A stretch of DNA of 63,856 bases, filler included, from Salisapilia sapeloensis CBS 127946 (GCA_023334545.1; 17 parts of 17 records of this genome joined end to end with filler, not necessarily neighbours in it), one strand, 5' to 3'; positions 4,541 through 5,879 are shown, counted from the whole stretch's first letter. Translations and numbers: made by a program. Notes: generated from the letters alone by a model not told the origin.

Positions 4541-4552
4541 AAAGATTGAGGG

Positions 4553-4684
4553 TGGGGACGGCGCAAGCGCTCGTCCCCGCTACCAAAAATTCTACTGTGG
4601 AGTTACCACGAAGGGCACTCCTGAGCCATTACAGCGCCGGGGTGCAAGGGGCCTGCTCCGGCTCATGCCAACTGCCTCATTCTT
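4553..4684 (-). ncRNA. RNU1: U1 snRNA gene, 5'-truncated (missing the first ~30 nt) by a retrotransposon insertion
   Basis: Minus strand reads AAGAATGAGGCAGTTGGCA, then stem-loop II TGAGCC...CCTTGCACCCC...GGCTCA (U1A-type TTGCAC loop), stem-loop III GGAGTGCC-CTTCGT-GGTAACTCC, Sm site AATTTTTGG, GTAG, and terminal stem-loop IV GGGGACG-A-GCG-CTTG-CGC-CGTCCCC. The order (TTGCAC loop, Sm site, terminal GGGGAC/GTCCCC hairpin) is U1, not U2. It closely parallels human U1 AATTTGTGGTAGTGGGGGACTGCGTTCGCGCTTTCCCC. The 5' ACTTACCTG and the 5' arm of stem I are absent. Confidence 0.88.
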
Positions 4685-4688
4685 TTCA

Positions 4689-5879
4689 TTTTTTTTTTAT
4701 TCACCAGAAGTTAGGTCTATGGTCTAAGCTAGTCTTTCGGAAGGTCTAGGGTCGCTGTAAGCTAGGCTACCATATATGACACCTACTTGGATTTTTTGAG
4801 GGCCCGATCCGTCGTGGGAGGCAGCCCTTGTGGTCTGTACAGACCTGTGGTGCCCATAGTAAGAGAAAGGAAAAAGGAGAAAGGAAAGTTAAGTCTAGAA
4901 GACCACCTCGACACTAGGCCGAGGGGTCTGTTTCCGGAGGCTGGGCATGGCGCTGGAGTCGTCCGGCGTGGGCACGCCACAACCGATGGCTGGAGTGGAC
5001 GCACATCGTCGAGATTTGGCGCTGGAGGGTCCGCGCGTTGGCCTTCTCGATCCCAAGGCTGGAGGTCAGGACCTTCTCGTTTTCTGGTGGCACTGCCCCC
5101 AGTGCACCATAGACGAGAGCCTGTAGCTTGACCCTCCAGCCCAAGGACTCTAAGGAGGTTGCCAGACCACGGTACTTTTCGACCTTGCGATGCCGAGCAC
5201 GACTAAGGTTGGAAGTGCTAGCATCGGGTCCGTCTTGTTCCTCGAACGCAATGACCAAGTCACAGACTGTGGCCACGTGCGTCCGATGGTCCAAGAGGAC
5301 AAGGTCGGGACGGAGGGTGCCTTCCTCAACGTCTGGTACCTGTCGGTCGACCCGGAGCTCGACGCCCGAAGGCGGAAGGGCTCGCTCGATACTCCTTACC
5401 AGCCGCGCCAGCACGGCATTGTGCCGCTGCCTGATGAGATCATCGTTGGCAGGGCAGTGCTGGAGAACGTGCGGCAGGGTCTCGGGACGCTCACACCCAG
5501 GAGACCGGCAGGCAGGCGACCCTCGAAGCTGCTTGCGCTTGAGGGCGGCCCGGGTATCGATTTGGTTCACCCGGGCCCTTAGCGCGAAGGAGTAGTCCGA
5601 GTCCGAGACCCCGGTACCCGTCCGAAGGAAGGCGCTTCCTAGTCCACCGATGGACCGAGCGACCTTGCCTTGGTCCCTCATGGCCACCCACCTGGCCCAG
5701 TGCTGGAGGCGCAGGTGGTGTCGGAGCCCACGGGCCACCGTGGCTCGCGTGAGGGGTGAGGGGGCGTGGGGGACCCGGAGCTCGAAGGGGTCGAGGGCAG
5801 AGTTGGCAGGCGTGCGCTCGGAGGGCCCCGACTCAACAAAGCGCAGCCGCATTGCCCGAAGGTGGCGAGGGATGTCGGT
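4689..5879 (-). mobile_element. 3' end of an RLE-encoding (R2/NeSL/Utopia-like) non-LTR retrotransposon with 3' UTR and poly(A) tail
   Basis: ORF with zinc knuckle and RLE domain (4914-5879), ~215-nt 3' UTR, then AAT plus a 10-A tail (plus-strand T run 4689-4698). Truncated by the contig end at 5879. Confidence 0.9.
4914..5879 (-). CDS. C-terminal part of retrotransposon ORF: CCHC zinc knuckle + restriction-like PD-(D/E)xK endonuclease (5'-partial)
   Basis: Open to the contig edge. Motifs FALRARVN, CRSPGCERPETLPHVLQHC (CCHC), RHN, LRPDLVLLD...D, KVEKY and LVYGALG are the characteristic order in R2/NeSL/Utopia RLE domains. No stops or frameshifts. Confidence 0.92.
   Translation of the reverse strand, partial: TDIPRHLRAMRLRFVESGPSERTPANSALDPFELRVPHAPSPLTRATVARGLRHHLRLQHWARWVAMRDQGKVARSIGGLGSAFLRTGTGVSDSDYSFALRARVNQIDTRAALKRKQLRGSPACRSPGCERPETLPHVLQHCPANDDLIRQRHNAVLARLVRSIERALPPSGVELRVDRQVPDVEEGTLRPDLVLLDHRTHVATVCDLVIAFEEQDGPDASTSNLSRARHRKVEKYRGLATSLESLGWRVKLQALVYGALGAVPPENEKVLTSSLGIEKANARTLQRQISTMCVHSSHRLWRAHAGRLQRHAQPPETDPSA

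Follow-up and report, generated by a model that had tools for sequence, protein, structure and literature searches.

A Utopia-like retrotransposon family that probably integrates into the stem-loop 1 loop of the U1 snRNA gene in an oomycete

Introduction

In the oomycete Salisapilia sapeloensis CBS 127946 (GCA_023334545.1), the 3′ end of a retrotransposon without long terminal repeats (a non-LTR element) lies directly against a U1 small nuclear RNA (snRNA) gene that lacks its 5′ part, which raises the question of whether the element arrived there by chance or belongs to a family for which the U1 gene is a fixed target. The locus is part of a window of 63,856 nucleotides, filler included, in which 17 parts of 17 records of this genome are joined end to end. 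It was noticed in an earlier sequence-only reading, which proposed a site-specific family inserted in loop I of U1, possibly a Utopia relative that had switched target.

Site-specific retrotransposons with a restriction-like endonuclease (RLE), such as R2, are a model for target-primed reverse transcription, and RLE elements are under development for gene insertion at safe multicopy sites. Little is nevertheless understood of how new targets are acquired, since a lineage usually stays with a single target over very long periods. Among elements specialized on snRNA genes, those reported are confined to U2 (Keno and Utopia), U1 (Dada-U1) and U6 (Dada-U6) (PMC4640811).

In this study, the anatomy of the element, its exact junction with U1, its copies in the reads of the organism and the insertion sites of its relatives were analyzed.

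Structure of the element and position of the junction

Five parts follow one another on the minus strand from 5879 to 4541: an open reading frame (ORF), a 3′ untranslated region (UTR), an A-rich tail, U1 and the flank downstream of the U1 gene. The ORF part comprises the C-terminal 321 codons of the element (4917–5879, minus strand), in which translation and alignment distinguish a linker, a CCHC zinc knuckle and an RLE; the stop codon occupies 4914–4916, and the frame is open up to the edge of the piece at 5879, within the linker. The knuckle (5454–5510, minus strand) was located by alignment at C124/C129/H137/C142 of the translated piece and reads CRSPGC..ETLPHVLQHC; C124, H137 and C142 are invariant in an alignment with 16 relatives, and the C129 column is not. 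It is followed by RHN, RPD, D, FE and K..KY, and the endonuclease core (RPD with P191-D192, D207, FE and K232..KY236; 5172–5309, minus strand) was assigned from invariant columns and from alignment to the RLE of the R2 protein 9nl3. The element keeps 30 of the 30 invariant columns of the alignment with the 16 relatives, and a profile of the C-terminal alignment matches the linker/CCHC/RLE region of R2 in the PDB (9nl3, 9dou and 9nl2 with E ∼1e-23; 8gh6 with E 2e-5). In Pfam, the ORF gave a weak zf-RVT match alone (E 0.075), and no Pfam RLE model fired. Judged by these motifs, the predicted protein is a PD-D-E-K restriction-like endonuclease with a CCHC knuckle, as is characteristic of RLE-type non-LTR elements (the R2/NeSL/Utopia group).

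The 3′ UTR (4702–4913, minus strand, by sequence reading) is 212 nt long and ends in CTGGTG, after which comes AATAAA; comparison of its fold with shuffled sequence revealed no excess structure (z +0.41). Its last stretch (4702–4720, minus strand) reads ...AGACCTAACTTCTGGTG ahead of AATAAA, and the CTGGTG is identical to U1 nt 13–18, an identity that may be due to chance or may be a relic of an ancestral nt-11 junction. The A-rich tail, AATAAAAAAAAAATGAAAAG (4682–4701, minus strand), has 20 nt beginning with AATAAA, and its length and sequence vary among copies.

The tail is followed by a U1 gene fragment of 129 nt (4553–4681, minus strand), identified by Rfam, by sequence identity and from contigs, which spans nt 32 to about nt 160–164 of U1 and thus holds the 3′ half of the stem-loop 1 (SL1) loop and stem, SL2, SL3, the Sm site and SL4. 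The 12 nt after it (4541–4552, minus strand) open the sequence that flanks the U1 gene on its downstream side, as read from a contig of the same organism. The Rfam U1 model matched 4553–4718 with 49.8 bits (E 4e-11); since the matched stretch begins with 31 nt that are not U1, this score stays below the gathering threshold of 69.5. A U2 or U11 match was absent from the Rfam scan. The UUGCAC loop of SL2, the Sm site AAUUUUUGG and SL4 are all present, and the fragment is 84–85% identical to the U1 of Globisporangium splendens and Pythium brassicum. An intact G. splendens U1 copy scored 88.9 bits in Rfam, above the threshold; in the organism of the window, the intact U1 copy carries ACUUACCUG on its 5′ side, and the 5′ end TACTTACCTG was recovered from contigs. 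By sequence and predicted structure, the target gene is U1.

The position of the break was fixed from contigs of the same organism (in a DNA run, a 20-kb single-copy contig with a depth of 43, and contigs of two possibly-RNA runs), which past 4681 read the reverse complement of TACTTACCTGACTGGTGCCCGACTGTGCTC, the true 5′ end of U1; the first retained base is therefore nt 32. The Rfam consensus structure, aligned via the Globisporangium U1, gives an SL1 loop of ten bases, GCUCAAUGAG, and the break falls inside it, at GCUC|AAUGAG, between nt 31 and nt 32.

The sequence-only reading had placed a CCHC and PD-(D/E)xK ORF, a 3′ UTR, a tail and U1 on one strand, with U1 rather than U2 as the target and the junction in loop I, and these points were borne out by the motifs and profile match, by the Rfam result and by the contigs with the intact U1 5′ end, respectively. 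Two of its lengths needed slight correction: the U1 part was rightly identified and measures 129 rather than ∼132 nt, and the 5′ loss is real and amounts to 31 nt where ∼30 had been given.

Copies of the junction in the reads of the organism

Copies were assessed at the level of contigs and with rough depths, in one genome for both the family and the nt 31/32 site. In the DNA run, the element body has a depth of 247 against about 42–43 for a 20-kb single-copy contig, which corresponds to ∼6 copies. The 3′ part of U1 together with 566 nt of downstream sequence forms a single contig of 707 nt with a depth of 267 (∼6×); since this contig runs unbranched from 4681, intact and interrupted U1 copies have a common downstream flank.

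Contigs that bridge the 3′ UTR and U1 carry at least three forms of the tail, all of which lead into U1 at nt 32: the form of the window (depth 42), a form shorter by 8 nt with a T>C substitution at 4697 (depth 96) and a form with at least 16 additional A (depth 17), with approximately one third of the U1 depth falling outside these junctions. Variable tails at one fixed position are the pattern left by independent target-primed reverse transcription events. Every contig path out of the 3′ UTR passes through an A-tail into the same U1 position; among contigs leaving the 3′ UTR in the DNA run of the same organism, no flank other than the U1 position was found. The ∼6× body and the three or more tails at one U1 position, in copies that all share their flanks in this one genome, lend some support to the proposal of a site-specific U1-targeting family.

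A multi-copy element contig (run X1) differs from the window at 4743, 4749, 4755 and 5738, i.e. at four of ∼1180 positions, and the copy in the window is therefore a minority variant or derives from another isolate. The intact 5′ half of U1 (corresponding to 4652–4727 of the window) was seen in one contig path alone, with the single-copy depth of 43. By contrast, junctions interrupted by the element reach a combined depth of at least 138, with 267 for the 3′ part of U1. It would follow that the element interrupts the majority of the U1 copies of this sequence type here.

Related elements and their targets

The closest proteins are Utopia-like, with 42–46% identity over the C-terminal region, and two very large protein libraries contained no protein more than 46% identical. 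The best full-length relatives have 1500–2300 residues in the order RNase H (RVT_3), reverse transcriptase (RT; RVT_1), CCHC and RLE, with archaeal-type RNase H upstream of RT present in the clade members P0003, P0011, P0017 and P0019; published oomycete Utopia elements have the same RNase H–RT–CCHC–RLE architecture (PMC4640811).

In a tree of 110 rows, built on the C-terminal region rather than on RT and from sequences other than the Repbase references, the element falls within a clade of 27 rows (SH-aLRT 99), outside which lie the R2-like and arthropod rows; the support of the clade is 88/96 in the tree of the labelled subset. The element occupies its own long branch, for which the tree gives no supported sister. 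Monophyly of the U1-associated members with the window element was neither shown nor rejected (AU p 0.096; 0.43 without P0011). By its C-terminal sequence, the element is placed with the U2-flanked oomycete Utopia-like elements, which come from G. splendens, Aphanomyces stellatus and soil contigs. Insertion at U2 nt 38/39, which defines Utopia, does not apply here, where the flank is U1; the name Utopia-like rather than Utopia proper is therefore used, pending an RT tree.

The insertion sites of the relatives were obtained by fetching the DNA around clade members and scanning it for snRNA; the names of species were taken from PMC8308905 and PMC10190603. Contigs L003 and L004 end ahead of their 3′ junctions, and the flank survey covered members other than P0006 and P0021. 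Each labelled member of the clade occupies a fixed site in a gene of the snRNA type (U1, U2, U3 or U5).

Four loci join U1 between nt 10 and nt 11: tandem element–U1 units of G. splendens P0003 (L001 2489–3001 and 8367–8831), a contig from soil that belongs to this family (L006 380–600), P. brassicum P0002 (L059 3860–4060) and a second G. splendens family, P0011 (L061 9980–10200), in whose array an intact U1 is followed by an element, by U1 from nt 11 and by the next element. This junction lies directly 3′ of ACUUACCU, the sequence that pairs with the 5′ splice site, and reads ...ACACG|ACTGGTG or ...TATTT|GACTGGTG, with no A-tail. U1 nt 10/11, used by three Utopia-like families, is a second site in U1 that seems not to have been described before.

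The U2-flanked members, P0001 (L002), G. splendens P0007 (L063) and Aphanomyces stellatus P0022 (L065), join U2 at UCUGUUCU (nt 39), the classical Utopia junction at nt 38/39, and P0007 has an intact U2 upstream. A U5 gene flanks P0005 (L060 3227–3339 and 7240–7330), a member from the assembly of Lagenidium giganteum ARSEF 373, for which contaminant scaffolds have been reported (PMC10190603). Here an intact U5 lies upstream, the 3′ U5 fragment begins right after loop I (CUUUUACUAAAG), the break reads ...TTAAAAAAAG|ATTGCCGTGG and the unit is tandemly repeated; from these flanks, P0005 is a candidate U5-targeting family. Two further members lie at U3, namely P0019 (L064 4938–5152 and 6–55; Rfam U3 42.3 bits, above threshold) and P0018 (L066 6400–6590 and 579–637; identified by blastn only). 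The U3 fragment starts just 5′ of box A in both (GGAUCAUUUCUAUAGU; GGATCATTTCTATAGT), with U3 sequence upstream of the element as well, and both are candidates for families that target U3. The organism behind L064 is AT-rich.

Two loci are less clear. Tandem copies of P0017 (L062 3880–4000 and 9618–9727) both have behind them an identical stretch of 110 nt, which contains an Sm-like site, AATTTCTG, and ends in a hairpin. Rfam gave no match to this stretch, even with a cutoff of E 10; a guessed identity as U4 is unsupported, and a divergent snRNA may have contributed the stretch as its 3′ part. In L005, a weak U2-like match (929–997; 74% over 70 nt, from ∼U2 nt 34) adjoins an ORF match that ends at query residue 183, and this may be an internally deleted Utopia copy.

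Fixed snRNA-type sites are thus the norm in the clade, and the target has changed several times; for example, P0022 (U2) pairs with P0018 (U3) in the labelled-subset tree with support of 99/97. The position in a clade with SH-aLRT 99 and the U1, U2, U3 and U5 sites of its members together support the earlier suggestion of a Utopia relative with a switched target.

On the upstream side, relatives with enough flank have an intact snRNA gene abutting the 5′ end of the element and a 5′-truncated copy at the 3′ end, often in tandem arrays (L061 3656–4001 and 10030–10375, L063 2465–3001 and L060 3227–4001). A 5′ snRNA fragment ahead of the element was not seen in any relative examined, and published oomycete Utopia elements likewise have an intact U2 gene upstream, no 5′ fragment and tandem arrays (PMC4640811). 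The expectation that a 5′ fragment of U1 would be fused to the 5′ end of the window element is thus probably wrong. In G. splendens, the spacer between U1 and the ORF is ∼130–185 nt long, differs between the two families and repeats within each array, and it is therefore read as the 5′ end of the element. This arrangement suggests that, with each insertion, the portion of the snRNA gene lying 3′ of the nick would be duplicated and a working gene left at the head of the array.

Integration mechanism and alternative explanations

We consider it likely, with good though not full confidence, that the piece is the 3′ end of an RLE non-LTR retrotransposon of the oomycete Utopia-like branch, whose family integrates specifically in the SL1 loop of U1 between nt 31 and nt 32. 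By homology with R2 and Utopia, the element protein would bind the DNA of the U1 gene, and its PD-D-E-K endonuclease would nick the antisense strand opposite GCUC|AAUGAG. The freed ...CATT-3′ end could then pair with the A-tail of the element RNA and prime reverse transcription, the product being the element, its A-tail and U1 from nt 32 in one orientation. The cleavage, the priming and the activity of the protein are inferred from these homologies, as is, from the relatives, an upstream architecture in which an intact U1 would head an array of element and truncated-U1 units. The duplicated part of the gene might arise by a distant second-strand cut or by the copying of a transcript begun at the snRNA promoter.

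The strongest rival holds that one chance insertion in a U1 gene was amplified within a U1 array, through tandem duplication, unequal crossing-over or gene conversion, with no specificity for loop I. Such a history would fit the copies in that they all have a common U1 fragment and at least 566 nt of flank (one contig at ∼6×) and are near-identical, with four of ∼1180 positions differing from the window; moreover, the relatives associated with U1 are inserted at nt 10/11 and not at nt 31/32. Slippage, which also alters the length of A-tracts, might account for part of the variation in the tails. However, the three tails at one junction include the presence or absence of 8 nt together with a substitution, as well as a much longer A-run. 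Furthermore, the labelled clade members without exception occupy fixed positions in snRNA-type genes, and in these relatives arrays headed by an intact snRNA gene are the normal product of repeated insertion. A chance origin is accordingly judged unlikely.

It might also be argued that the true junction is at U1 nt 11–12, the element ending in ...ACCTAACTT, the CTGGTG being U1 nt 13–18 and the 5′ arm of stem I having later been replaced by the A-rich stretch. The Rfam global alignment does pair AGACCUAACUU-CUGGUG with U1 nt 1–17, the CTGGTG lies just upstream of the tail, and relatives join U1 at nt 10/11. Nevertheless, chance would place some 6-mer of U1 nt 1–31 near the tail in approximately one case in five (a rough estimate rather than a computed value), the A-rich stretch begins with AATAAA and varies among copies as a poly(A) tail does, and the segment between that stretch and AATGAGG is unlike U1 nt 19–31, which leaves this explanation very improbable.

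Scarcely any credence is given to a template-switch chimera or retro-pseudogene, in which the reverse transcriptase would begin copying U1 snRNA and, on reaching nt 32, switch to the element RNA at its tail: LINE reverse transcriptases do make snRNA chimeras (SINEU heads; PMC4494074) and the protein-bound loop I is a possible stall site, but the U1 part runs unbroken into the downstream flank of the intact gene for at least 566 nt, whereas copied RNA would stop at the RNA 3′ end, and relatives show the same architecture at their fixed sites, where intact genes lie upstream. The hallmarks of such chimeras, unrelated flanks around an RNA copy that stops where the mature snRNA does, are absent here.

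Beyond specific integration at nt 31/32, a wider reading can be offered tentatively, with slightly less than even confidence. The oomycete Utopia clade, rather than specializing on U2, would be a radiation that has switched repeatedly among precise positions in snRNA-type genes of Pol II (two in U1, and others in U2, U3 and U5). An intact gene would be left on the 5′ side by each insertion, perhaps for use of its promoter, and the window family would add loop I of U1 to this series. If this reading is true, homologous proteins with different DNA targets may show how target recognition works in such enzymes and how it changes. In any case, one clade of proteins with ∼40–45% identity occupies precise sites in four small-RNA genes, two of them in U1, which provides a comparative series for mapping the parts of the protein that read the target and adds to the snRNA-gene parasites published so far (U2, U1 for Dada and U6 for Dada). 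A further question concerns the host, namely how a low-copy essential gene such as U1 is tolerated with most of its copies seemingly interrupted.

Comparison with known systems

The nearest known system is Utopia of oomycetes, which targets U2 (Kojima and Jurka, 2015; PMC4640811). Utopia has the same linker–CCHC–RLE module, forms a supported clade with the window element and, like it, has a precise 3′ boundary inside a spliceosomal snRNA gene in the same orientation. However, the window element targets the SL1 loop of U1 (nt 31/32) instead of U2, has 42–46% identity to Utopia over the C-terminal region, lies on a long separate branch and has AATAAA in an A-rich tail, a feature missing from the 3′ ends of the relatives read here. 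The two G. splendens families (P0003 and P0011) and P. brassicum P0002 have in common with it the clade, the target gene, the orientation and an oomycete host; they differ in their junction at nt 10/11 and in the absence of an A-tail, and a search for publications on these U1-associated families found none.

More distant systems resemble the element in part. R2, an element of 28S rDNA with Myb and zinc-finger motifs in its N-terminus, has a homologous linker/CCHC/RLE region and presumably shares the mode of integration, target-primed reverse transcription at one set position of an RNA gene present in many copies, but it has another target and belongs to another clade. Keno, of the Tx1 clade, is also a non-LTR element in a spliceosomal snRNA gene; unlike the window element, it has an apurinic-type endonuclease, is found in animals only and targets U2 (PMC4640811). 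Dada-U1, in the U1 genes of fish (PMC3706591; PMC8869645), is the sole published U1-targeting transposon family that was found; it is a DDE-type DNA transposon with target-site duplications of 6–7 bp, and its protein and mechanism are unrelated to those of the window element.

The searchable literature, later reviews included and Repbase and Dfam lying outside the search, yielded no non-LTR element that targets U1, U3 or U5, which agrees with the earlier statement that no RLE family with a U1 target was known. Against this background, the locus looks, from its sequence, like an element of the Utopia type for which both the target gene and the site within it are new.
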